Part shown: positions 42,842 to 63,715 of the stretch, in pieces
How the letters are laid out: each line of letters begins with the position of its first letter
How positions within the stretch are numbered: the first letter of the stretch is position 1
Assembly (NCBI RefSeq): GCF_000143415.4
Contig: NW_003314380.1
Location: 144,924 to 208,923, forward strand
Reading direction: 5' to 3'
DNA: 64,000 nucleotides
Source: Selaginella moellendorffii
Taxonomy: Eukaryota; Plantae; Lycopodiophyta
Translations under genes and position numbers: made by a program
The notes under the pieces: model-generated
The model's input: the letters and a program-made list of their open reading frames with translations, nothing else
Told to the model about the DNA's origin: nothing
The model's database searches: none

Positions 42842-42955
42842 CATCGTAAGCTACTGTCTTCTTTCTCTTTAAAAATTATATTTATCTGCTAGCGACACTA
42901 ATAAATCCCTCTAGACGTGCAACAACCAAAAACGTGTGTACATCGGAGTCTAGCT

Positions 42956-44441
42956 ATGGAGGAGAAGAAGCAGCGACCACACTTGCTAGCAGTTCCATTT
43001 CCAGCTCTGGGCAACATCAATCCTATGCTTCAACTGTGTAAGACGCTCGTATCCAATGGATTTTTCATCACTTTCTTGATCTCAAACAAAAGGGAGACTT
43101 TTATAGCTACTGAGCAACAAGCTACTGGTCAGCATTTGAGATTTGTCTACTTACCAGATGCTTTCATTCCAGAAGCCTTCTCCGTCACTACGGTTCCGCT
43201 CCAGTTTGCTGCTATCTTGGAAAAGAAGCTCAAATTGGCGGTGCCAGAGATTATTCGAGATATCATGACAGATGATTCTCTGCCTAGAGTGTCTTGCATA
43301 CTCACCGACGTAGCAATTACTAGCCTTCAAGACGTCGCTCACCAGTTCGGGATTTGCAAGGTCTCTCTTTCAACATTTTCTGCTTCGTGGCTTAGCATCG
43401 AGAATGGTCTTCTTGTGCTTGAGGAAAATGGACTCCTGCCGCTAAAAGGTACTTTTTAATCTATTCCACTTGAGTTTTTATTATATTTTTTCAGGCACTT
43501 CGAGGATCATAGATTTCGTACCCGGCCTCCCTCCAATTTCTGGACGGGATTTTCCTTCGCATCTTCAGGAAGTTCACGCCGTAGATCCCGACTTCTCTCT
43601 CCGATATACCAGGAACCAGATCATACAGAGAGACGCATTGGTGTTTATAAACTCTTTTCACGAGTTAGAAACATCTCAGCTTGACCAGCTTGCTAGAGAC
43701 AATCCACGGTTCGTTCCAATCGGTCCATTGCTCCCGTCATTTGCATTCGACGGCCAGGTTGGAGTGGACGAACTCGAGCAGGAGAGGTGTGGTTTTTGGA
43801 CTGAAGATATGAGCTGCCTCGACTGGCTGGACGAGCAGCCATCCAAATCCGTCATCTACGTCTCCTTTGGAAGCCTGGCCAGTGCTTCTCCTGACCAAAT
43901 CAAGCAGCTCTATACAGGACTCGTGCAAAGTGATTATCCTTTCCTTTGGGTGATACGACCAGACAACGATGAGCTTCGAAAACTTTTCGATGATTCAAGT
44001 TATGACAAATGCAAGTTTGTTTCCTGGGCTCCTCAACTCAAGGTAAGCTTCTTCTTTTACCTCTTTTTCTTGCTTAATATGTCGTCCACACAGGTTCTCA
44101 GGCATCCTTCCGTGGGTGCGTTTCTCACTCATTGTGGATGGAATTCTCTTTTGGAGACGATCGTTGCTGGAGTCCCCGTGCTTGGATGGCCTTTCTTGTT
44201 CGACCAGCCACTTAACTGTGCGCTCGCTGTGGAGCATTGGAAGATTGGCTTTCGCTTGCCACCGAGTCCAGATGCCACAATCGTTGAAAAGGCAGTGAAG
44301 GATATGATGGGAGAAGCAGGCCAAATGTGGAGAGACAATGTCACGAAGCTTGCCATCTCCGCGAAAGATGCAGTCTCTGATGGAGGTCTTTCACATCGAA
44401 ACTTGGAAGCTTTTAAGTGTAAAATGGAGATTGTTTCATAA
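42956..44441 (+). CDS. UDP-glycosyltransferase (GT1), copy 1, 3 exons
   Basis: [41 protein letters not shown] box WAPQLK|VLRHPSVGAFLTHCGWNSLLE...WPFLFDQ. Introns at about 43449-43494 and 44043-44092. Confidence 0.92.
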
Positions 44442-44486
44442 AACCAGATTTACTTAAACTAAACTGCCGGCAGAAGCTCTACAGTG

Positions 44487-44720
44487 GCCAGCAAAGACGG
44501 GGCAAAGATCACGACATTCGAAAGATTTCCAGCGATCCTGGACCGGAGAAGCGAAATTCATCGGCTTTACCTCGCGAAGCCGGCCCAGCCCTGGAATCGA
44601 CGCGCAAGCTCCCATTCTACCCTAGCCAAGCTTCTCCGTGAAATTCATTCAAATACAATGAGAGGTTCCTTCGAATATGCGGATGCTCTTGATTCCTAGA
44701 ATATGTTTTTTACATAGACA
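44487..44720 (-). pseudogene. Duplicate of the 5' end and upstream region of the ART-like gene (matches about 61957-62205)
   Basis: Near-identical to 61957-62205, including the MGACASIPGLGRLRE exon and its GTAAA donor. Truncated at the end of intron 1. Confidence 0.85.
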
Positions 44721-44820
44721 AGCATTGGGCCGCTGTTCTTCCTTCTTTGTTTCATCGCTGCTGGGCTCTTCTCCTCATTAGAAATGCTTAGTTTGTGGTG
44801 TTTCACTGACTGCTTTAGTT

Positions 44821-46306
44821 TTATGCCATTTTACACTTAAAAGCTTCCAAGTTTCGATGTGAAAGACCTCCATCAGAGACTGCATCTTTCGCGGAGATGG
44901 CAAGCTTCGTGACATTGTCTCTCCACATTTGGCCCGCTTCTCCCATGATATTCTTCACTGCCTTTTCAACGAGCGTGGCATCTGGACCCGGTGGCAAGCG
45001 AGAGCCAATCTTCCAATGCTCCACAGCGAGCGCACAGTTGAGTGGCTGCTCATACAAGAAAGGCCATCCAATCACGGGGACTCCAGCAACGATCGTCTCC
45101 AAAAGAGAATTCCATCCACAATGAGTGAGAAACGCACCCACGGAAGGATGCTTGAGAACCTGTGTGGACGACATATTATGCAAGAAAAGAGGTAAAAGAC
45201 GAAGCTTACCTTGAGTTGAGGAGCCCAGGAAACAAACTTGCATTTGTCATAACTTGGATCTTCGAAAAGTTTTCGAAGCTCATCATTGTCTGATCGTATC
45301 ACCCAAAGGAAAGGATAATCACTTTGCACGAGTCCTGAATAGAGTTGCTTGATATGGTCGGGAGAAGCATTGGCTACGCTTCCAAAGGAGACGTAGATGA
45401 CTGATTTGGATGGCTGCTCGTCCAGCCAGTCGAGGCAGCTCATATCTTCAGTCCAAAAACCACACCTCTCCTGCTCGAGTTCGTCCACTCCAACCTGGCC
45501 GTCGAATGCAAATGACGGGAGCAATGGACCGATTGGAACGAACCGTGGATTGTCTCTAGCAAGCTGGTCAAGCTGAGATGTTTCTAACTCGTGAAAAGAG
45601 TTTATAAACACCCATGAGTCATTTTGTATGATCTGGTTCCTGCTATACCGGATAGAGAAGTCGGGATCTAAAGGGTGGACTTCTTGAATTTGCAAAGTAA
45701 AATCCCGTCCAGCAATTGGAGGGAGGCCGGGTACGAAATCAATGATCCTTGAAGTGCCTAAAAATTAATTTAAAGAAAAAATCAACTCAGACTGGAATAA
45801 AAGAAAAACATACCGTTTAGCGGCAGGAGTCCATTTTCCTTGAGCACAGGAAGACCATTCTGGATGCTAAGCCATGAAGCAGAAAATGTTGAAAGAGTCA
45901 CCTTGCAAATCCCGAACTGGCGAGCGACGTCTTGAAGGCTAGTAATTACTACGTCGGTGAGTATGCAAGACACTCGAGGCAGAGAAGGATCTGCCATGAC
46001 ATCTTGAATAATTTCTGGTACCGCCAATTTGAGATTGTTCTCCAGAATAGCAGTAAACTCGAGCAGAACCGTAGAGGCGGATATGACTCCTGGAAGCAAA
46101 TTATCGGGTAAGTAGACAAATCGCAAGTGCTGGCCTGTAGCCCGTTGCTCTGTAGCTATAAAATTCTCCCTTTTGTGTGAGACCAAGAAAGTGATGAAAA
46201 ATCCACTGGATGCGAGCCTCTTACACAATTGAAGCATAGAATTTATGTGGCCTTGAGCTGGGACTGGAACTGCTAGCAAGTGTGGTCGTTGCTTCATCTC
46301 CTCCAT
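44821..46306 (-). CDS. UDP-glycosyltransferase (GT1), copy 2, tail-to-tail with copy 1
   Basis: PHLLAVPVPAQGHINSM, the same two intron positions, and a PSPG box ending YEQ. Frame is intact after splicing. Confidence 0.92.
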
Positions 46307-47221
46307 AGCTAGACTGCGATGGACACACGTTATGCACATAAAACCAAAAAAGATAGTCTTACACGCCTCTAGCGATTAGAAGCTATCTAGAACCATTATT
46401 AACAAGAACATTTAAAATTCAGGGGTAGCTGCGCACAAACCTGTTACTGGCTGTCAACGAGTGAGCATGTGCTCTTTGACAGAACTGTTCTGGTGGTTAC
46501 ATGTTCTCAGAATCCTGGCTATAACTCTTTTTGATCCAACAGCCACCGATAGTCTGATTAACTTATTGCCCCCATAAAGAACCAAGAAAAGATTAAATGA
46601 GTACTGAAAATTGTTATACATTGAAATGCATAGGCTATATTCCTATATTTTTTAAGGTTAATAACACTTTATTAACTATTTAAGAACAACAAATGTCTTC
46701 TGTGAATGGACCTCTCACGCCTGCCACACACAAAATTCCATATATAAAAAGGATTTTTGAGATTTCATTAATCTCTTGAGCAACGATCAGAACTAAAAAT
46801 ACAAAGTGTTCTACTATCCTCGTTGAGGGATGCTTGGTGTGAAAGATACCTCTTGCTGCATAACAGGGATGCTAAGAGATGACAGTACCTCATCAAGGCT
46901 CATGTTTGAGAGGCTTAAACAACATCTTTGCAAGGAGCTCTTGCCACAACATTCTAGACTGTGAGTGAAGATTAGCAACCCACCCATTGATCCTCTGTAG
47001 ACCAAAGTTCATCAAGCAGCAAGCCTGTAGCTTAAAGCCAAGAGGTATGCAGTGATCATCACTTTAGTTTAAGTAAATTTGGTTTTATTTCGTCCCAGAT
47101 ATTGGATCTTTAGCAGAGATCGACATTATCTATCCACATTTGTCCTGCTTCTCCCATGGTATTCTTCATTGCCTTTTAAACGATCGTGGCATCTAGACTC
47201 TGTGGCAAGCGAGAGCCAATC

Positions 47222-50554: not shown

Positions 50555-51079
50555 CAATCTTCCAATGCTCCACAGCAAGCGCACAATTAAGTGGCTGCTC
50601 GTACATGAAAGGCCATCCAAGCACGAACAATAGTCTCCAAGAGAGAATTCCATCCACAACAAGTGAGAAATGCACCCATGGAAGGATGCGGGAGAACCGA
50701 CATATTAAGCAAGAAAAAGAGGTAAAAGAAGAAGCTTACCTTGAGTTGAAGAGCCCAGGAAACAAATTTGCATTTGTCATAACTTGGATCTTCGAAAAGT
50801 TTTCGAAGCTCTGGTCATATCACCCATAGGAAAGGATAATCACTTTGCACGAGTCCTGAATAGAGTTGCTTGATATGGTCGGGAAAAGCACTGGCCATGC
50901 TTCCAAAGGAGATGTAGATGACTGATTTGGATGGCTGCTCGTCCAGCCAGTCAAGGCAGCTCATATCTTCCGTCCAAAAACCACACCTTTACTGCTCGAG
51001 TTCGTCCACTCCAACCTGGCCCTCAAATGCAAATGACAGGAGCAATGGACCGATTGGAACGAACCGTGGATTATATGTT

Positions 51080-52237
51080 TCCACGCTCGCCAGTTCAGGA
51101 TTTGCAAGGTGACTCTGATTTCGTACCCGGGCTCCCTCCATTCACTGGACGGGATTTTTCTTTCCATGTTCAAGAAGTCCACCCCATAGATCCTGACTTC
51201 TGTATCCGGTATAGCAGGAACCAGATCATACAGAGTGACGCAGGGGTGTTTATAAACTCTTTCCACGAGTAAGTTTTGGTCAAGCCCAAAACTTTGATAT
51301 CTTTCTTGTCATGGAAATCGATCCAAAAGTCCAATTCTTTTTAGTTTTTTGGAGAAATAGAGGAATGCTCACTAAAGAAAAAAGACACAATGGAAAAAAT
51401 ATTACATCTGAGTCCAGAAAAAAAGAAGCTGTTTACATATACCTTGCTCGATGTGAGATGGATTGTGGCTACTGGCAGTGAACGATGTGGCGCATTGGCA
51501 GAAATCGTCCAGACATCCCTGTGCTTTTCACTCTGGAAAGAAGAAAAAAGAGAGTCGATCAAGCTATCGATCATCAAGAACATATCTTACGGGATGAGAG
51601 GGAATGGTAAGATCAGAGATTATTCGAGATATCATGGCAGATGATTCTCTGCCTAGAGTGCCTTGCATACTCACCGACGTCCTTCAAGACATCGCTCGTT
51701 CGGGATTTGCAAGGTCTCTCTTTCAACATTTTCTGCTTTGTGGCTTAGCATCCAGAATGGTCTTCTTGTGCTCAAGGAAAATGGACTCCTGCCACTAAAA
51801 GGTATGCTTTTCTTTTATTCCAGTCTGAGTTGATTTTTTCTTTAAATAATTTTTTAGGCACTTCGAGGATTATTGATTTCGTACCCGGCCTCCCTCCAAT
51901 TGCTGGACGGGATTTTACTTTGCAAATTCAAGAAGTCCACCCCTTAGATGACTTCTCTATCATGTATAGCAGGAGCCAGATCATACAGACTGACGCATGG
52001 GTGTTTATGAACTCTTTCCACGAGTTGAAAGACCTGTGGAGCATTGGAAGATTGGCTTTCGCTTGCCACCGAGTCCAGATATGCCACAATCGTTGAAAAG
52101 GCAGTGAAGGATATGATGGGAGAAGCAGGCCAAATGTGGAGGGACAATGTCACGAAGCTTGCCATCTCCGCGAAAGATGCAGTCTCTGATGGAGGTCTTT
52201 CACATCGAAACTTGGAAGCTTTTACGTGTACAATGGA
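51080..52237 (+). pseudogene. Scrambled UGT fragments (51080-51270 and 51613-52237) flanking a copy of the ART-like gene 3' end
   Basis: DFVPGLPP..GRDF, EIIRDIMADDSLPRV, VEKAVKDMMGEAGQMWRDNV; large internal deletions; PSPG box missing. Confidence 0.85.
51272..51612 (-). pseudogene. Duplicate of the last exons and 3' flank of the ART-like gene (matches about 60915-61273)
   Basis: Identical exon SEKHRDVWTISANAPHRSLPVATIHLTSSK with its splice sites. Confidence 0.88.
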
Positions 52238-53993
52238 GTATGGACTTCACTTTCGTTGTGCTATTAAGAACATTGGCCATGAGCATGTAGGCCGCAGAGT
52301 CCTTGGCATTGAGCCTCTCGAGAGCCTCGAAAGCAATCCTCGCCACCGCCAGGTTCCTCCACTTTTGAGACGCCGCAAGAACACTCGTCCAAGTCACAGC
52401 GCTGGCCCCCATTGGCATCGATCTGGCCAGCTCCACCGCCGCCTCGAGCTGGTTGCCTCTCCCCAGCAAATCCACCATGCAATCGTAGTGCTCCACACGA
52501 ATGGTGCAAGCTCCATGCTTTGCGCGATCGAGCATCGCATCGAAGTATCTTTTTCCCAGCTCCACAAGCCCCTGGTGGCTGCAAGCCGTGAGAACGCACG
52601 TAAAGCTTATCTCGTCCACCTTGAGGCCCTGCTCTTGCATTGCGTGGAAGAGCTCCAGCACGGCTTTGCTCTTGCCTTGACGGCTATGCCCCGCGAACAG
52701 TCCGTTCCATGTCGCCGAGTCAGTCATAGCCATGCAATCGAAAAGGTGGTGCGCGGAGGCGATGCTTCCACACCTTCCATAAACGTCTACTAGAGAGTTT
52801 GCGAGAAGTGGCTCAGATTCTAGCCCGCACCGACAAATCCTCGCGTGAAAGAAGGCTAGTTTCTCGATGTTGGCCAAGTTGCCGCAGGCTTTGAGAGCCG
52901 CGGTGAAGGCTTGGGCATCCGGCTGGAAGTCACGCAGGAACTCCGAGAACAAGTCGAGAGAAAGTTGCGACTCTCCATTCTCGACGTATCCAGCGAGGAG
53001 CGAAGTCCACGAGATTGGAGTGTGGAGCTTCATCCTGTCGAAGACTCCACGGGAATCCAGTAGGCTCCCACACTTTGCGTACAAATCCACCAGCGTGTTG
53101 CTCACAAATACGTGCGCCTCGGATCCTTGTTTCAATGCCTCGGAGTCTAGATCCATGGCTTTCTCCAGTGACACCACCTTGACGAGCTTCCCATTTACGT
53201 CTACGCCAGCTTCTTTAGATGCTAGACTCATGCAGGCTTTAAGCCCAGTAACAAGCGCGCCAACGTCGAGTTTGCAGCCACTTTCCACCATCTTTGAGAG
53301 CAAAAGAAGCCCAATCTCAACTTGCCCATTGACGGCAAATGCAGACACTAGAGCAGTCCAGGAGATTACATCTCTTTCAGGCATTTTGTCGAAAACTTTG
53401 GCAGCGTCCAAGGTGCTACCGCAGGTCCCATACATGTCTATCAAGCTGTTGGCCACGAAAATGTCTATGCGCCCGCGAGAAACAGCCTTGGAGTGGAGTT
53501 CCATGCCTTTGGCAAGAGCCCCGAGCTTCGCAAGCTCTCCATTTGATACCACTTGGCCCGTTTCTTTCACTGCCAGGCCACTACAAGCCTTGAAAGCAGC
53601 CACAAAGGTTCTGCCGTTCAAAGACTCCAGACCCAAACGCTCGGAGACGGACGAAAAGATCTCTAGACAAAGTTGCTCGTCGCCGTTTTCGGCATAGCCA
53701 AGCAGCAACGCGTTCCAGGACACCAGGCTGTGGCACGCCATTCCGTGAAAAACACGAGAGGATTCCTCCATGCTTCCACACTTTGCGTAGAGATCGACGA
53801 GGGAATTCAAGACAAAGATGTCGAGATGGAAGCTTTCGAGGAGCTGAGAGTGGACGAGCCGAGCCCTCTCCAGGCTGTGTAGTTTGAGAAGAGTGCCTCG
53901 AGTGATCTGTGCATTCTCTTGAGCTGCGACGGAGACGCAATCTTTGATTGTGGCCATGGCTTCTCTGGCAGCTCTTTTGAATCCTCTCGACAT
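52200..53993 (-). CDS. PLS-class PPR protein ending in an E-type motif, no DYW domain
   Basis: IFVLNSLVDLYAKCGS and DVISWTALV repeats; EHYDCMVDLLGRGNQL...AYMLMANV. Confidence 0.9.
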   Translation of the reverse strand: MSRGFKRAAREAMATIKDCVSVAAQENAQITRGTLLKLHSLERARLVHSQLLESFHLDIFVLNSLVDLYAKCGSMEESSRVFHGMACHSLVSWNALLLGYAENGDEQLCLEIFSSVSERLGLESLNGRTFVAAFKACSGLAVKETGQVVSNGELAKLGALAKGMELHSKAVSRGRIDIFVANSLIDMYGTCGSTLDAAKVFDKMPERDVISWTALVSAFAVNGQVEIGLLLLSKMVESGCKLDVGALVTGLKACMSLASKEAGVDVNGKLVKVVSLEKAMDLDSEALKQGSEAHVFVSNTLVDLYAKCGSLLDSRGVFDRMKLHTPISWTSLLAGYVENGESQLSLDLFSEFLRDFQPDAQAFTAALKACGNLANIEKLAFFHARICRCGLESEPLLANSLVDVYGRCGSIASAHHLFDCMAMTDSATWNGLFAGHSRQGKSKAVLELFHAMQEQGLKVDEISFTCVLTACSHQGLVELGKRYFDAMLDRAKHGACTIRVEHYDCMVDLLGRGNQLEAAVELARSMPMGASAVTWTSVLAASQKWRNLAVARIAFEALERLNAKDSAAYMLMANVLNSTTKVKSILHCTRKSFQVSM

Positions 53994-54750: not shown

Positions 54751-54903
54751 AAACATAGGACCTCTCACCTCGAGCAATACAAGATCGATCGAAGATCACC
54801 ACTGCGAGTGAGAGGATCACGAGCAAGAGGATTGAAAGTATAGGATCTCTCACCTCGAGCAATACAAGGTCGACGATATGAATCGAAGATCACCGCAGCG
54901 AGT
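54726..54903. repeat. About 90-bp imperfect tandem duplication spanning the gap between the convergent ankyrin and PPR stops
   Basis: gagcaagaggattgaaa..ataggatctctcacctcgagcaatacaag..cga..gaagatcacc occurs twice. Confidence 0.8.
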
Positions 54904-56560
54904 ACATGCTAGAGAGCATCACATACGGCGTTCCATCCTCGGGTTCTAGCTCCGCCACAAGCCGGGCAGCTCTGTGACCCTGTTCGTCCATCCCCTCCAC
55001 TTGGGTCTTGCAAGCGCTCAGCAAGTGCATCCACGAGTAAACATCCGGCTCGAATGGCATCGCCGCCATGAGCTCCTCCGCCGCCACCAGCCTCCCGGAT
55101 CGTCCCAGCATGTCCACCATGCAAGCGTAGTGCTCCATCTGGGCTTCCACTCCAAAGTCTCCCACGCCAAGCTGGAAGTAAGCTCGGCCGCCGTGAACCC
55201 GCCCGGCGTGGTTGCAAGCGCACAGCACGCTCACCAGCGTCACCTCGTCCGGGCTCACGCCTTCGAGCGCCATGGCGTGGAAGAGCTCCAGAGCTTGCCT
55301 CCCGAGCCCCTGCTGCGCGTAGCTCGCGATCATCGCAGTCCAGGATACCGCGTCCTGCGTGTGGAGCCGCTCGAGCACCGCGCGAGCCTCGCGCAGGCTG
55401 CCGCATTTCCCATACATGCTGATGAGCGAGCTCTCGACTTTGGAGTGGTAGAGCACAGAGCCACTCTCGGCGATGGCGGCGTGGACCATCCTTCCATCGC
55501 TAACCGAGGCCAAGTCGCCGCAGGCCTCGAGCGCGCTGATGAACGCGACTTCGTCCGGCCTCTCGCCCTCCAGGATCATCCTCCGGAAGGTGAGGAGCGC
55601 CTCGTCGAACTCGCGGTTCCGGCAGCACGACGAGAGCATCACCGTCCAGGACACCACGTCCCGCCGCTTCATCCTCTCGAAAGTCTCTCTCGCGTCGGCC
55701 AGGCTCTGGCACTTACCGTACATGTTGACGAGCGAGTTCTCCACCGCGAGCTCGCCGGTGAATCCGAGCTGGGCGATGCTGGAGTGGATCTCTCGGCCTC
55801 TGGCCAAGCTTCCCAAGTTGGCGCACGCATCCAAGCCCCCCGTGATCGTCACTGCGTCGCCCCTGACGCCTTCCAAGTCCATGACGCCGAAGAGCCTCAG
55901 TGCCTCGGCCGAGTCTTCGTTTCTCACGTAGGCCGCGATGAGAGCGTTCCAGGACACCACATTCCTCACGGGCATCTTGTCGAAAAACTCTTTCGCTTCT
56001 TGCAAATGCCCGTGTTGGGCATAAGCCGTCACCATGGAGTTCCAAGTCACGACGCTTCTCTCGCCCATCTCGTCAAACAAGTCGCGAGCTTTCTGGAGAT
56101 GGCCTTTTTGGGCATACGCGGCGATCATGGTATTCCACGAAGCAGCGTTTTTCCTCGGCATCTTATCGAACATACTTCTCGCCGTGTCCATATCCCCTCT
56201 CTGGGTATAAGCCGCGATCATGGTGTTCCAGGTCACTTCACATCTCTCGGTGGCAGCATCAAAGAGTTCCCTGGCACCTTGAAGATGGTGGCTCCTCACG
56301 TAAGCGGCGATGATCATGTTCCACGTATAGAGGTTCCTGTGTCTCGGCCCGGTGCCATCGAACACTTCTTTGGCGTCCTTGAGGCTTCCACACTTGCCAT
56401 ACATTTCGATCAAGAGGTTTCGCAGGAAGCCGTTCTTGTCGAGGCCGGCAGTAGCGATTTCAGCGTGGACACGCTTGCCTTCTTCCAAGTTTTTGGAGCT
56501 CCCACACTTTCGCAGGAGGGGAGCGTAGTGATCCAAGTCGTGAGGACTGATCGAGATCAT
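54890..56560 (-). CDS. PLS-class PPR protein ending in an E-type motif, no DYW domain
   Basis: Run of S-type repeats (VTWNTMIAAY..G), EHYACMVDMLGRSGRL, MPFEPD, PYVMLSSMY. Confidence 0.93.
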   Translation of the reverse strand: MISISPHDLDHYAPLLRKCGSSKNLEEGKRVHAEIATAGLDKNGFLRNLLIEMYGKCGSLKDAKEVFDGTGPRHRNLYTWNMIIAAYVRSHHLQGARELFDAATERCEVTWNTMIAAYTQRGDMDTARSMFDKMPRKNAASWNTMIAAYAQKGHLQKARDLFDEMGERSVVTWNSMVTAYAQHGHLQEAKEFFDKMPVRNVVSWNALIAAYVRNEDSAEALRLFGVMDLEGVRGDAVTITGGLDACANLGSLARGREIHSSIAQLGFTGELAVENSLVNMYGKCQSLADARETFERMKRRDVVSWTVMLSSCCRNREFDEALLTFRRMILEGERPDEVAFISALEACGDLASVSDGRMVHAAIAESGSVLYHSKVESSLISMYGKCGSLREARAVLERLHTQDAVSWTAMIASYAQQGLGRQALELFHAMALEGVSPDEVTLVSVLCACNHAGRVHGGRAYFQLGVGDFGVEAQMEHYACMVDMLGRSGRLVAAEELMAAMPFEPDVYSWMHLLSACKTQVEGMDEQGHRAARLVAELEPEDGTPYVMLSSMYSLR

Positions 56561-56603
56561 GGAACATCAACCTCTTAACGAGCCAGAAAAATTACCAAAA
56601 GAA

Positions 56604-58187
56604 TTACTGTACAGTCTTGATGCCTGCTCTTGACAGCATCCATCTCTTTCCTATGTAGAAGGCGATGGCAACTAAAACCAAACAGAGAGATCCAACCCAC
56701 CAGCGAACTCCCCACGATGTTTTCTCGGGAACTTCGGGGACTTCAAGCAAAGCATCGACCTGCAAAAGGCAATCAATCAATCACTGCTAGAAAAAATGCG
56801 AAGGCAAAACAACACACCTCGATCGGTGGTTTGGTCCAGTTGGCAATGATCCCTGGAACGTGACCTTGTCCGACAACCGCAACAACGGAGGCGTGCTTGC
56901 TGCACGCGCTTCTCAGTGTTGAAGTCATGAATCTGCTCGAGCAAGCCAAAGCAGAAGAAGATTTACGAAGCGTACATCGAACTTACAAGTCTCTTTCCGT
57001 CAGGAGAGCGTTTATAAGCGAGGGAAAACTCTTGACATATTCTCCCAGGAGCTTTACAGTGTCCTCGGAGAGCTCCTGAAGCAAAGTATTTAAGGGAACT
57101 GCTCTATAAAAAGTTGGCAAACCATTTTGTCAACCCACGGTAGGCAGATTATACTCAAGAGTAAACTCCCGCCCAGCTTCATCTTTTGCCACAGTGTCAA
57201 CCCCGCCGTAGCTCGTTGTAGTGTAATCTAAAGACGAACAAGTCACTAGACTGACAAAAAGTCATACACTACTTACCGAGGCAAGCCGGTCCCCGAGAAT
57301 AATTTCCGCATTGCACGCGCGTCCTGTATTGTAAGCTCTTCGGAATTCGTCCCCCGGTGAAACTCCCAGCCTTTGAGCAACCTGAACGTCTATAGGTTTG
57401 AAGTGATTTACACCTACGAGGAAGGATACCTTTGCGAGGAGGTAAGAATACAAGTTTCCAAGGGTATTCCCTTGCTTTGATCGCCAGGCTTCTAGCATCT
57501 TCTTTACTGTGGGAATCTGAGAGGAAAACAAAATGAAATACTAATCCATAAAAACGTACTTCATGAATCGTTGGTTGCAAAAGCAAAGAGCGTCGTTCAC
57601 TGCATAACTCAAGAAAAACTGCCTGTTCACGAAATGAAGAACAAAAAGGTGAAATGTAGAACAAAAAGCGAAGAAAGCTAAACCTCTGGTTTGACGAGCT
57701 TGATCACGGCTTCAACGAGATCGCACGACTCCTGCTATTGTATTTCAATTTCACAATTTCATGAAACAAGAAGCAAAAAGATACCATGCTAACGCGAAGG
57801 AAGAAAACTAAATATACTTCCCTTAGAAACATGCGATGTGCCGACGATATAGACCGTAGACTCAAGGCCGGTCTCCCCCGAAATGTGATGAATGATTTTC
57901 ACAGACTTTATCATCTTCTTAGGCAACTCGCGGAGAGCCTCTTCTTCTCCCTCTTCTTCTTCTTCTTCTTGTCCTTGACCTTCTCCTTCTTCGTCGCCTC
58001 TTCGATCCTCCTGTTCCTCCGCCCCGGCGTGTTTATCAGACCTCTCCGTCTCTACTGAGTCCCCAACACGATCCAATCGATCGCTTCCGGGATCCGCCTT
58101 AGAATTCTCCAAGCGATCCGTCTCGAATGCGGCGGGAGGAGCATCATACACCTTTCCCGCGGCGTCTCCCTTCGTGCTCTGCGCCAT
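56604..58187 (-). CDS. TraB-domain protein, copy A; first intron has a non-canonical GG donor, so it may be defective
   Basis: VYIVGTSHVSK, VFLELCSER, PGDEFRRAY, ILGDR, LLTERDL|FM, VVAVVGQGHVPGI and a C-terminal TM tail. Exon-1 junction reads AAG|GGAAGT. Confidence 0.78.
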
Positions 58188-58304
58188 GCTCCGCACTAAA
58201 ACCTCACTCAATATCAACGGTTCTCTTCGTCATACATTTTAAAGCCCGCGAAAAGCCATTCGAAGCGAAGTACCATTCTTCTTTGCAGGCACCGCGATCC
58301 TAAT

Positions 58305-58480
58305 CTTCTTTCGGAAGTCCAATTCAAGCGGTTGCGTTTTCTGTTTTTCGAAAAAAGGAAAACTTCACAGATTTGAAATGGATTATTTGTGCACCAATCC
58401 CTCTCCCAGGATGCCGTCGATATTCATCGCGGGCATACCGTGGAACATGAATACTCCGGCATTCATGCATGCTTTGGCAT
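58305..58480 (-). pseudogene. Remnant of the ART-like gene
   Basis: Encodes FMFHGMPAMNIDGILGEGLVHK, matching FMFHGTPEINIDGILHEGLVLT at about 61535-61605. The 3' flank gaagtccaattc matches about 60990. Confidence 0.75.
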
Positions 58481-58484
58481 TGAA

Positions 58485-59195
58485 ATACTCTGGCATTTCC
58501 CGTGCATGTTGATGAGCGAGTTCGCCACCCTGAGCTCGCCGTTGGAGCTAAACTGGGCGATCCTGGAGTGTACGACGCTGTGACGATGACGGGAGGCTTG
58601 GATGCGTGTGCCAACTTAGGAAGTTTGGCGATAAGTGATCCCTTTTGAGATGCCCAAGCATTCGCTCAAAGTGATCCAAGTCCATGAGCCTCAGTGCCTC
58701 GGCCGAGTCTTCGTTTCTCACGTAGGCCGCGATGAGAGTGTTCCAGGACACCACATCCCTCACGGGCATCTTGTCAAAAAACACTCTTTCGCTTCGTGCA
58801 AACGCCCGTGTTGGGCATAAGTCGTCACCATGGAGTTCCAAGTCACGACGCTTCTCTCGCCCATTTCGTCAAACAAGTCCCGAGCTAGCCTCTTTGGGCA
58901 TACGCGGCGATCATGGTATTCCACGAAGAAGCGTATTTCCTTGGTACAAACTTCTCGCCGTGTCCATATGCCCTCTCTGGGTATACGTCGCGATCATAGT
59001 GGCGTCTCACGTAAGTGGCGATGATCAAGAGGCTCCTGTGACAATGCCTTCTCTAGCGTACTTGAGGCTTGCCATACATTTCGATCAGCAGGAAACCGTA
59101 CCGTTTTTGTCAAGGCTTCTCTTCTAACAAGTTTTTGGAGCCGCCACACTTTCGGAGAGGGGGAGCGTTCGTGAGGACTGATCGAGATCATATGA
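58485..59195 (-). pseudogene. Deleted and frameshifted duplicate of the 5' half of the PPR gene at 54890-56560
   Basis: MISISPH start and FFDKMPVRDVVSWNTLIAAYVRNEDSAEALRL, collinear with about 55704-56560, with many deletions. Confidence 0.9.
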
Positions 59196-59253
59196 GAGCT
59201 GGAACATAACGCTGTTAACCTCTAACGAGGTAACTGGAAAATTTACAGGCTCT

Positions 59254-60844
59254 TCACAGCATCCATCTCTTCCCTATGTAGAAGCCGAGGCCAACTCCAA
59301 CCAAAGACAGAGATCCAAGCCGCCAGCGAACTCCCCACGATTTTTTCTCTGGGACTTCAAGTAGAGCATCGACCTGCAAAAGGGCATCAGCACTAGAAAA
59401 ATGCGAAGGCTAATAAACAACACACCTCGATAGGTGGTTTGGTCCAGTTGGCAATGATCCCTGAAACGTGACCTTTGCCGACAACCGCAACAACGGAGGC
59501 GTATTTGCTGCACGCGCTTCTCAGCGTTGAAGTCATGAATCTGCCCAAGGAAACCGAGCGAATAAGAGTTAAGAAGCGTCAGACGAACTTACAAGTCTCT
59601 TTCCGTCAGGAGAGCGTCCAGAAGCGTGGGAAAATTCTTGCAATATTCTCTCAGGAATTTTACAAATTCATCGGTGTCGGTGAGCTCCGTTAGCTGAAGC
59701 AAAGTGTTAAAGAGAACTGCTCTATAGGGAAAACGAAGACTTGACAAACCATTTTCTCGAGTTCCTCAGCCCCCGGTAGGCGAATTATACTCCAGAGTAA
59801 AGTCCCGCCCAGCTTCATCTTTTGCCAGAGTGTCAACCTCGCCACAGCTCGTTTCAGCGAAATCTAAAACGAACAAGTCACTCCACTGACGGAATGCCAT
59901 GCGCACTACGTACCGAAGCAGGCCGGTCCCCGAGAATAACAAGCGCATTGCAAGCGCGTCCGATTTCATAAGCTCTTCGAAATTCACCCCCCGGTGGAAC
60001 TTCCAGCCTTTGAGCAGCCTGAAAACCTGTAGTTTTGAAGTGATGTACACTTACGAGGAAGGATACCTTTGCGAGGAAGTACGAATAAATGATTCCAAAG
60101 GAATTCATTTTCTTTGATCTCCACGACTCTAGCATCTGCTTTACTGTGGGAATCTGAAAATTCAACGGAGGAATACAAAATAGAATACTCATCCATAACA
60201 ATCCATAAAGACGTACTCCATTTGTTGTTTTCAAAAGCAAAGAGCATCGTTCTCTGCACAACTCAAGAAAAACTGCCTGTTCACGAAAAGAAGTCAGATA
60301 GAGTCTGTGGAACAAAAAGTGAAGAAAGCTAGCCTCTGGTTTGACGAGCTTGATCACGGCTTCAACGAGATCGCACGACTCCTGTAATTGTTTTTCATGA
60401 ATTTCATGAAACAAGAAAGGAAAAAGAAAGAATGCCATGCAGCCCAAAGGAAGAAAACTAATAAGCTCGAGAAACACTTGCCTTAGAAATATGCGCTGTG
60501 CCGACCATATAGACCGTAGACTCAAGGCCGGTCTCTCCCGAAATGTGATGAATGACTTCCACAGATTTTCTCATCTTCTCAGGCAACTCGCGGAGAGCTT
60601 CCTCTTCTTCTCCCTCTTCTTCTTTTCCTTGTGCTTCTTCTCCTTCTTCTTCGCCCCTTCGATCCTCCTGTTCCTCCGGCCCGGCGTGATTCTCAGTCTT
60701 CTCCGTCTCTACTGAATCGTCGACACGAACCAATCGATCGCTTCCGGGATCCACCTTAAAATTCTCCAAGCGATCCGGCTGGAATGCGGGGGGAGGAGCA
60801 TCACAGACCTTCGCCGCGGCGTCTCCCGTCGTGCTCTCCGCCAT
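59254..60844 (-). CDS. TraB-domain protein, copy B (intact, first intron GC-AG)
   Basis: Same exon series as copy A: VYMVGTAHISK|GCAAGT, VFLELCRER, PGGEFRRAY, ILGDRPAS, VVAVVGKGHVSGI. Stop at 59254. Confidence 0.85.
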
Positions 60845-61034
60845 GCTCCGCCCTAAAACCTCAGTCAATAATGCGCTAAAGTTACCTTAACAATGCGACG
60901 AATTATACTTTAAAGCTTTGGTCAAGCCCAAAAAATTTGATATCTTCCCAATGTTAGACCTTGTCATGGAAATCGATCCTAGTCTCTTCCGAAAGTCCAA
61001 TTCTTTTTAATTTTTGGCAGAAATTGAGGAATGC

Positions 61035-62088
61035 TCACTAAAGAAAAAGAAAAAACGGAAAAGTATTACATCGAGTCCAGAAAAAAAGAAGCTGTTTATA
61101 TATACCTTGCTCGATGTGAGATGGATTGTGGCTACTGGCAGTGAACGATGTGGCGCATTGGCAGAAATCGTCCAGACATCCCTGTGCTTTTCACTCTGGA
61201 AAGAAGAAAAAAGAGAGTCGATCAAGCTATGGATCACCAAGAACATATCTTACGGGATGAGAGGGAATGGTAAGAACGAGAGAGATAGAGTGGAGTCGAT
61301 CAATCTATGACCACGAAGAGCTCTTACCGGAGAGGGTATGAGCACGACAGAGATTGGAAAGAAGAAGAGAGAGAGAGAGAGTGGAGGCTCGATCAATCTA
61401 TCACCAAGAAGGAGAGATCTTACCGGAGAGGGTATGAGCACGAGGAAGAGGAGTATCTTGGGGACGCCATTGAAGTTGGGCTTTGTGAAGCTTAGGCAGT
61501 TATTGACGGAGGTGCTGAAGAAGAACTTGTCGAGATTTGTGAGCACCAATCCCTCGTGCAGGATGCCATCGATGTTTATCTCGGGCGTGCCGTGGAACAT
61601 GAATCTGACCAGATCCATCCCTGATCCACGCAATAGAAGCGAAAGCAGGAGTGAGAAAGGAAATTTTAGGCAAGAAAGGAAGAAGAAGAGCGTACGATAG
61701 CATATTGGATCGATCGAGCGAGGGAACACGCTACCTGGACGGTCATCGCCGAAGAGCCTCTGGCACTCGCGGCGGAAGCCAGTGTAGGGCGCGTAATCGG
61801 CTTGTTGCAAGCCGGGATTCATCTCCACGGTGTAGTTGTAGCAGCTGATCATCCAGGAGACCCTGGAGCGCACGAAATCCGGATCCAGGAAGGCCGCGAG
61901 CCAGTATCTGTCCTCCGACGCTGCCACATTGTGAAGCGCTGCCGGTGCTTCCTTCTGGCGAGCAAAGACGGGGCAAAGATCACGAAATTTCGAAAGATTT
62001 CCAGCGATCCTGGACCGGAGAAGCGGAAATTCACCGGATTTACCTCGCGAAGCCGGCCCAGCCCTGGAATCGACGCGCAAGCCCCCAT
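61035..62088 (-). CDS. Small PARP-like ADP-ribosyltransferase-fold protein with MGACAS N-terminus, about 197 aa, 5 exons
   Basis: Exons 62088-62044, 61954-61696, 61620-61424, 61195-61106 and 61037-61035, with phase-consistent GT-AG introns. Motifs RFMFHGTPEINIDGILHEGL, FFFSTS, ILLFLVL, DVWTIS..HRSLPVATI. Confidence 0.68.
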
Positions 62089-62224
62089 TCTACCCTAGCC
62101 AAGCTTCTCCGTGAAATTCATTCAAATACAATGGAAGGCGCTTAAAACCCAGAGGTTCCTTCGAATATGCGGATGCTCTTGATTCCTAGAATATGCTTTT
62201 TACATGTTCTTCCTTCTTGGCATT

Positions 62225-63715
62225 AGAAATGCTTAGTTTGTGAGTCTGGTTTTATGCCATTTTACACTTAAACTTCCAAGTTTCGATGTGAAAGCATTGG
62301 ACCGGTCTTGACGCCGCCGCCTTTGTTCTTCCTTTGTTTCATCGCTGCTGGGCTTAGCTGCTCCTCTCGCTCGCGCAGCTCTTCTCCTCACTAGAAATCG
62401 CCACACTAGAGCTTCGAGCTTGGTGGTTTAACCCTCCTTTAGTTCAAGTAAATTTCCATTTTACACTTAAAAGCTTCGACGTGAAAGACCTCCATCAGAG
62501 ACTGCATCTTTCTCAGAGATGGCAAGCTTCGTGACATTGTCCCTCCACATTTGGCCTGCTTCTCCCATCATATCCTTCACTGCCTTGTCAACGATCGTGG
62601 CATCTGGACTCGGTGGCAAGCGAGAGCCGATCTTCCAATGCTCCACAGCGAGCGCACAGTTAAGTGGCTGGTCGTACAAGAAAGGCCATCCAATCACGGG
62701 GACTCCAAGCACGAACGATCGTCTCCAAAAGAGAATTTCATCCACAATGAGTGAGAAACGCACCCACGGAACGATGCTTGAGAATCTGTGTGGACGACAT
62801 ATTAAGCAGGTAAAAGAAGAAGCTTACCTTGAGTTGAGGAGCCCAGAAAACAAACTTGCATTTGTCATAACTTGGATCTTAGAAAAGTTTTCGAAGCTCA
62901 TTGTTGTCTGATCGTATCACCCAGGCTTCCAAAGGAGACGTAGATGACTGATTTGGACGGCTGCTCGTCCAGCCAGTCGAGGCAGCTCATATCTTCCATC
63001 CAAAAACCACACCTCTCCTGCTCGAGTTCGTACACTCCAACCTGCCCGTCGAATGCAAATGACGGAAGCAATGAACCGATTGGAAGAAACTGTGGTGTGT
63101 CTCTAGCAAGTTGGTCGAGCTGAGATGTTTCGTAGAAAGAGTTTATAAACACCGGTATACCCGAGAGTGAAGTTGGGATCTACGGTGTGAACTTCTTGAA
63201 GATGCAAAGGAAATTCCCATTCAGAAATTGGAGGGAGGCCGGGTACGAAATCTATGATCCTCGAAGGAATAATAAAAACTCAAGTGGAATAGATTAAGAA
63301 GTACCTTTTAGCGGCAGGAGTCCATTTTCCTTGAGCACAAGAAGACCATTCTGGATGCTAAGCCACGAAGCAGAAAATGTTGAAAGAGTCACCTTGCAAA
63401 TCAGGAACTGGCGAGCGACGCCTTGAAGGCTAGTAATTGCTATGTCGATGAGTATGCAAGACACTCTGGGCAGAGAATCATCTGCCATGATATCTCAAAT
63501 AATCTTGGGCACTGCCAGTTTGAGATTCTTCTCCAAGATAGCAGCAAACTGGAGCAGAACCGTAGTGACGGAGAAGGCTTCTGGAATGAAGGCATCCGGT
63601 AAGTAGACAAATCTCAAGTGCTGACCAGTAGCTTGTTGCTCAGTAGCTATAAAAGCCTCCTTTTTGTTTGAGATTAAGAAAGTGATGAAAAATCCATTGA
63701 TGAAAAATCCATATA
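62225..63715 (-). pseudogene. UGT pseudogene, 5'-truncated and frameshifted
   Basis: Collinear with UGT copies 1 and 2, but split into 63495-63722, 63294-63488, 62898-63152 and 62467-62763 in different frames. The N-terminal PHLLAVP is replaced by AT-rich DNA. The 3' end is duplicated at about 62225-62295. Confidence 0.88.

Follow-up and report, generated by a model that had tools for sequence, protein, structure and literature searches.

A weakly transcribed spliced gene of Selaginella moellendorffii that may encode a shortened, highly diverged ADP-ribosyltransferase-like core

A minus-strand locus at positions 61035-62088 of a 64,000-nucleotide stretch of Selaginella moellendorffii DNA (hereafter the window) raises the question of whether a few short exons, one of which carries a motif reminiscent of the ADP-ribosyltransferase (ART) superfamily, make up a genuine gene, and what kind of protein such a gene would encode. 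An earlier note, made from the letters of the window, had proposed at this place a hidden five-exon gene of about 197 amino acids (aa), specifying a stand-alone, PARP-like ART domain with a lipid anchor. Here, we set out the evidence for and against this proposal. The reading that we favour, and to which we give about an even chance, is that of a real, very weakly and conditionally transcribed, Selaginella-restricted spliced gene, the product of which has at its centre a highly diverged and shortened PARP/Tpt1-like core of the ART superfamily that binds nicotinamide adenine dinucleotide (NAD). An origin in the ART superfamily is the best single reading of the locus, being shared by such a functional, diverged protein and by part of an alternative, discussed below, in which the gene is decaying from an ART ancestor.

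The gene model itself can be followed in the sequence. On the minus strand, it begins with an ATG at 62088 and ends with a TGA, and comprises four coding exons and four introns (Table 1); all four introns run from GT to AG, their 3' ends are pyrimidine-rich and their phases are compatible, as established by script and by reading of the minus strand. To this extent the five-exon proposal stands, and the peptide pieces that had been quoted for it are correct, although the fifth 'exon' turns out to be the stop codon only, and the coding sequence of 552 nucleotides (nt) specifies 184 aa rather than about 197. Because intron 2 keeps the frame and has no stop, a single open reading frame (ORF) of 276 aa (61250-62080) covers exons 2 and 3. 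Retention of intron 4 would let the frame continue for 32 codons to a stop at 61009-61007. Intron 3 holds a 96-nt tandem duplication that takes in the last bases of exon 3 together with the GT donor (61215-61347 against 61293-61443, 74%), and this duplication makes a second in-frame donor at 61328/61327, the use of which would add 32 residues. The proposed exon 4 would provide the last two strands of an ART fold.

The view that the locus is a real gene is supported by a comparison of the two haplotypes of assembly GCA_000143415.2, namely GL377684.1 (locus L001), which is identical to the window (100% over 2,501 nt), and GL377652.1 (locus L002), both of which were retrieved with a neighbouring 556-aa pentatricopeptide-repeat protein as anchor. 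The cluster to which this anchor protein belongs has S. moellendorffii proteins as its named members. The second haplotype preserves the ATG and every splice site, and its frame is intact. Between the two, the exons differ by six substitutions in 552 nt, three of them synonymous and three non-synonymous (K>E, A>E and V>I), with no insertions or deletions (indels), while the introns differ by 13 substitutions in 499 nt and three indels; the contrast has a Fisher p of 0.10 for substitutions and of 0.018 with indels included. Exon 1 is identical in both haplotypes, exon 4 is identical at 90 of 90 positions, and exon 2 has two synonymous and two non-synonymous differences. Intron 1 carries one substitution and intron 2 four, and intron 3 has deletions of 1 nt and 18 nt in the second haplotype. 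We also considered whether intron 3 might be coding, and rejected this idea: the 1-nt deletion breaks the read-through frame on the other haplotype, so that the stretch is truly intronic.

Coding signal and splicing point in the same direction for the middle of the gene. Measured by codon usage against nine long ORFs from the window, the proposed frame, and no other, appears coding-like in exon 2 (+17.8 bits) and in exon 3 (+25.2 bits), the scores of the introns being close to zero or negative; the model as a whole reaches 0.197 per codon, and the long genes of the window range from 0.09 to 0.375. Transcription was assessed with about 9 million reads from each of three RNA-seq runs. One contig of run X1, 161 nt long and with a k-mer depth of 7.2, lacks intron 2 exactly as proposed: it joins 61619 to 61734, skipping 114 nt with CT..AC on the plus strand, and its exon 2 part covers 61734-61856. 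Run X1 also carries spliced mRNA of a neighbouring TraB-like gene, which identifies it as RNA.

What the product might be is indicated by exon 3, since all similarities found are weak and confined to its first 20-40 residues, around an HGT motif. Exon 3 matches the Pfam PARP profile (PF00644) with an E value of 0.031 and 14.2 bits, aa 5-25 lying on profile positions 50-70, and the NCBIfam profile for the RNA 2'-phosphotransferase Tpt1/KptA (NF002013) with an E value of 0.04, aa 5-40 lying on positions 96-131 of 183. Its five PDB matches at E<10 are all proteins of the ART fold, three being Tpt1 (E 0.083) and two PARP4 (E 0.65-0.89). The motif itself, RFMFHGTPEINIDGIL, occupies the aligned stretch of the PARP profile and coincides with the same motif in the PARP4 and Tpt1 chains. 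A search with ESM language-model features, when given exon 2, retained intron 2 and exon 3 together, placed a small PARP-only cluster first (0.92), with the PARP set making up 53 of the 100 matches; exon 3 alone scored 0.85-0.86 among PARP, Arr-ms, Tox-ART-HYD1 and ART-PolyVal clusters, all of which are ART-type.

Further elements emerge when the protein is laid by eye beside known ART domains. In PARP1, the reference residues are H862, G863, Y896, S904, Y907 and E988. The nicotinamide-stacking Tyr and the Ser of PARPs lie in a Y-F-A-x5-S-x2-Y pattern (PARP1 Y896, S904 and Y907), and the third residue of the triad, located where the penultimate strand begins, is Glu or, in mono-ARTs, Ile, Leu, Tyr or Thr. 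By eye, the elements of the Selaginella protein follow the order of an ART core: V-E-x-N-P-x-L, the HGT strand and a helix, F-F-S-x5-C-x2-F, ILLFLVL, D-V-W-T-I-S and LP....I.L. The first of these, VEMNPGL...Y..Y in exon 2, resembles the N-terminal strand and helix of mono-ART PARP domains, and exon 3 supplies an RFMFHGT strand, a helix, FFFSTS..C..F and the hydrophobic ILLFLVL strand. Where PARPs have their stacking residues, the protein reads F-F-S-T-S-V-N-N-C-L-S-F, with both Tyr changed to Phe, Ser changed to Cys and the spacing kept, a correspondence seen by eye and without profile support. A clear catalytic Glu is lacking, the sole candidate for this position being the Asp of RDVWTIS in the proposed exon 4; the replacement of Tyr by Phe and the want of an obvious Glu had both been pointed out before, and can be seen in the same way.

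Taken as a working mechanism, the middle of the protein, encoded by the end of exon 2 and by exon 3, most likely forms a diverged, shortened NAD-binding core, and we infer that the protein would adopt a minimal ART fold, in which 24 residues would separate the HGT motif from the next strand, as in Tpt1. With both Tyr changed to Phe, Ser changed to Cys and the loops cut, at most the binding of NAD(+) or ADP-ribose, or a weak mono-transferase or hydrolase activity, would be expected of it, and not a canonical PARP reaction.

Two sets of results weigh against this reading, the first of which concerns similarity. A phmmer search of 1.84 billion representative proteins with the 276-aa ORF returned no match at E<=0.001; in so large a library, only scores of an estimated 45 bits or more would pass, and distant kin could therefore escape detection. 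Word searches with the same ORF, with the 178-aa read-through of exons 2 to 3 and with the exon 3 region found no match even at E<=10. These and all other searches were run on single exons or on uninterrupted stretches of the window. Both exon 3 and the 276-aa ORF (11.2 bits) fall short of the Pfam PARP cut-off of 26.7 bits, and the Tpt1/KptA match has 13.5 bits against an equivalog cut-off of 231. Exons 2 and 4 have no ART match in Pfam, NCBIfam or PDB, the matches of exon 2 being at chance level and exon 4 giving no family or PDB match of any kind. On sequence scores, then, the protein fell below the threshold in every test for membership of PARP, Tpt1 or SRO. The count of shared ESM features, 159, is lower than the 170 typical of true family members, and the ART matches share one motif of 20-40 aa and so are not independent of each other. 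AlphaFold2, run without an alignment, gave all-helical and unusable models with a predicted local distance difference test score (pLDDT) of 38.3 for the 178-aa read-through containing intron 2 and of 55.2 for exon 3. The proposal of an ART-fold domain is weakly supported in so far as the exon 3 matches in three libraries, and the ESM search, all lead to the ART clan, and falls short in that the scores are far below the cut-offs and exons 2 and 4 add no ART match of their own.

Such a record invites the suspicion of chance, that is, that an orphan or de novo ORF, or a non-coding transcript, happens to contain an ART-like HGT stretch and has no ART fold. The absence of relatives in the phmmer and word searches agrees with this, as does the circumstance that the ORF was singled out from 64 kb; the E values of 0.03-0.08 are barely better than the control noise of 0.15-0.28; in the feature search, a score of 0.9 is attained by between 4 and 10 of every 100 shuffled proteins; and the only PDB matches of exon 2 are to unrelated proteins (IcmW and ficin, E 0.6-1.5). 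Accident, however, does not readily account for the agreement of three libraries and a language-model search on both the clan and the position of the motif, for an NCBIfam match that spans 36 aa and continues through the next strand, or for the F-F-S-x5-C-x2-F spacing and the closing LP....I.L strand, which by eye come in the order expected of an ART. Ten non-coding or antisense ORFs used as controls (1,753 aa) gave no Pfam match better than E 0.15, and by this measure, together with the PDB values of exon 2, the exon 3 signal is slightly above noise. We consider chance resemblance distinctly improbable.

The second set of contrary results comes from expression and genomic setting, and is best weighed alongside the main rival reading, in which the locus is a decaying or never-functional copy: a shortened PARP-like remnant, drifting in a rearranging cluster, transcribed at noise level and yielding no useful protein. 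Almost no reads from the three deep RNA-seq runs fall on 60888-62400, the TraB-like neighbour having a depth of 30-95. While intron 2 is spliced exactly as predicted, no RNA joint was found in these runs for introns 1, 3 or 4, so that the proposed junctions were confirmed in part. The few reads at intron 1 are ambiguous and may derive from a copy at 44.5 kb, and the only contig over exon 4, from run X1, ends in letters that match a partial copy at 51380-51410, which assigns it to the 51.4-kb copy and not to this gene. By codon usage, none of the frames of exon 4 carries a coding signal (-9.0 bits). The surroundings are a rearranging duplication cluster of UDP-glycosyltransferase (UGT) and TraB-like genes in which three dead pieces of the same gene lie close by (Table 1), and the end of exon 3 and its donor have been duplicated inside intron 3. 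The NAD-contacting Tyr and Ser are replaced, and far fewer residues separate the ILLFLVL strand from the last strands than in PARP domains. The exon/intron contrast between the haplotypes is statistically weak, and three synonymous to three non-synonymous changes are no significant departure from the neutral expectation. Against decay, neither haplotype has acquired a stop, a frameshift or a broken splice site, though their introns carry indels; exons 2 and 3 retain good codon usage; intron 2 is spliced precisely; and the start codon and the lipidation motif are conserved. On balance decay seems to us unlikely, if a reading to be taken seriously.

Table 1. Positions in the window of the gene model, its partial copies and the adjoining TraB-like copies
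Feature	Position	Strand	Description
Exon 1	62088-62044	-	45 nt, ATG and 14 codons (MGACASIPGLGRLRE), begins MGACAS
Intron 1	62043-61955	-	89 nt, GT..AG
Exon 2	61954-61735	-	220 nt, 73 codons and 1 base
Intron 2	61734-61621	-	114 nt, GT..AG, in frame, stop-free
Exon 3	61620-61424	-	197 nt, 65 full codons, candidate ART core
Intron 3	61423-61196	-	228 nt, GT..AG
Proposed exon 4	61195-61106	-	90 nt, 30 codons, SEKHRDVWTIS...LPVATIHLTSSK; acceptor AG and open frame
Proposed intron 4	61105-61038	-	68 nt, GT..AG
Proposed exon 5	61037-61035	-	Stop codon TGA alone
Copy of exon 1 and intron 1	44485-44865		Exon 1 with one synonymous change; homology stops at the intron 1 acceptor
Copy of end of intron 3, exon 4 and 3' flank	51271-51619	-	Exon 4 at 51443-51532, 90/90 identical
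Exon 3 fragment	58385-58452		68 nt, frameshift and stop
TraB-like tandem copies	56473-58213 and 59115-60870	-	About 80% identity to each other

The partial copies deserve a few words of their own. In the 51.4-kb copy, the flanks of exon 4 have diverged by a few per cent and exon 4 itself is identical; an Rfam scan of 60800-62400 found nothing, and this perfectly conserved exon accordingly corresponds to no known RNA. A transposable element or other repeat as the source of the gene was rejected, the partial copies moving with duplicated UGT and TraB-like segments and not as a dispersed repeat. On the opposite strand at the 51.4-kb copy, a gene of 206 aa without a Pfam match has been called (L001:14465-15516). 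The copy of the exon 1 region is flanked by a 1.5-kb inverted UGT repeat (42931-44427 and 44826-46331, 91% identity), and UGT copies or fragments occupy 42931-44427, 44826-46331, 50555-52238 and 62451-63699.

On its two sides the locus is adjoined by a UGT fragment that ends at about 62467 and by a strongly expressed TraB-like gene that starts at about 60846-60880. The latter raises the question of whether a longer gene, which would run on into the TraB-like gene downstream, has these exons at its 5' end, in which case the protein would not stand alone. On the other haplotype, annotation has indeed called a gene of 825 aa with a TraB Pfam domain (L002:4614-9930) that begins at this very ATG (L002:4614), and the TGA at 61035 is only some 190 nt from the TraB-like start codon at 60846. 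The RNA tells otherwise, in that the TraB-like depth of 30-95 drops to zero at about 60888, no joint to upstream exons occurs in any of the three runs and the depth over the candidate gene is about nil; moreover, the annotation of this haplotype has the TraB-like gene by itself (389 aa), and the 825-aa model takes in the second TraB-like copy as well, as is typical of a merged prediction. From the end of the depth, the lack of upstream joints and the separate call, we read the 825-aa model as such a merged prediction, allowing for rare read-through, and think a true fusion highly improbable. The annotations of the two haplotypes are inconsistent, with no gene on one and the merged model on the other; the description of the gene as hidden consequently applies to the window's haplotype, where none is called, and fails for its counterpart, where an annotated model shares the start codon.

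Several other features of the surroundings were noted. The TraB-like copy at 59254-60844 is the one with the depth of 30-95 and the 389-aa call, its partner being called at 219 aa. On the UGT side, a gene of 227 aa with no Pfam match on record is called at 62467-63488 (L001:3073-4094); the ORF at 62467-62763 has a UGT-like C-terminal stretch (GVPVIGWPFLYDQPLN), and this gene is thus probably a truncated UGT. The RNA reads at 62480-62778 show numerous fixed differences, and hence stem from paralogues or from the other haplotype. Two intronless pentatricopeptide-repeat genes lie on the minus strand, at 54890-56560 (556 aa) and 52203-53993 (597 aa).

Returning to the diverged ART-like protein that we favour, its N-terminus could add a further property. 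The start MGACASI fits the N-myristoylation pattern G-{EDRKHPFYW}-x2-[STAGCN]-{P}, with Gly2 and Ser6, and has in addition a Cys at position 4, and MGACAS could therefore direct N-myristoylation and S-acylation, and hence tether the protein to a membrane. Lipid anchoring, enzyme activity and a role as sensor or decoy are conjecture. In its fullest form, the proposal would be a minimal ART domain of about 130 aa, peculiar to lycophytes and anchored by lipid, that has His-Phe-(Asp?) in place of H-Y-E, still binds NAD+ or ADP-ribose and acts at the membrane in the role of mono-transferase, NAD hydrolase or sensor; all these parts together we hold to be decidedly doubtful. If true, it would be among the smallest PARP-type domains of eukaryotes, too diverged for sequence searches.

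The wider meaning depends on which reading is right. If the ART reading is true, plants outside the seed-plant models would possess, in addition to PARP1-3 and SRO/RCD1, minimal PARP-type domains that stand alone and may be tethered to a membrane, and the gene would mark the far, barely recognizable edge of a lineage-specific expansion, helping to define the minimal ART core and to study the birth and decay of such genes. If it fails, the locus is an ordinary low-expression orphan or a decaying ORF in a duplicated gene cluster.

Among known systems, three families offer comparisons. The first is the PARP family (PF00644), and within it the mono-ARTs of the H-Y-I/L/Y class, such as PARP7, PARP10, PARP11, PARP12 and PARP14. 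The Selaginella protein has in common with these an HGT strand followed by a helix and, by eye, a V-E-x-N-P-x-L strand, an F-F-S...F strand spaced much as in PARPs and, last, an LP....I.L strand; by ESM features, small PARP-only clusters come nearest to it. It differs in having no clear residue at the Glu/Ile position and no accessory domains; as had been stated, WWE, RST, WGR and PARP regulatory domains are absent by Pfam, RST and WWE giving no match at E<=10 in the exons or the 276-aa ORF. It is also shorter: counted from the NPxL strand onwards, it has about 130 aa, where PARP domains have about 165 aa or more.

The second family, Tpt1/KptA (NF002013; PDB 9ld4), has an N-terminal RNA lobe and an Arg-His-Arg-Arg catalytic tetrad. 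It provides the best and longest sequence match of the gene, at 36 aa, and the spacing of 24 residues from HGT to the next strand is alike in both; by eye, the NAD lobe is compact in both, and in both a V-W strand lies close to the end. In contrast, the Selaginella protein lacks the N-terminal RNA-binding lobe, its exon 2 shows no similarity, and, by eye, it has LDK where the catalytic Arg would precede the V-H-L-S strand.

The third family is that of the plant SRO/RCD1 proteins, which combine a PARP-like domain with RST, with or without WWE (PMC2848248). That the locus is a fragment of a conventional SRO or PARP gene was considered and rejected, as nothing PARP- or SRO-like flanks it. SROs are larger, the RST and WWE domains have no counterpart here, and phmmer found no similarity to them; like the Selaginella protein, however, they come from plants, their PARP-like domain is degenerate and the residues of its triad are non-canonical, and the Selaginella protein, for its part, has kept the His of the HGT motif.
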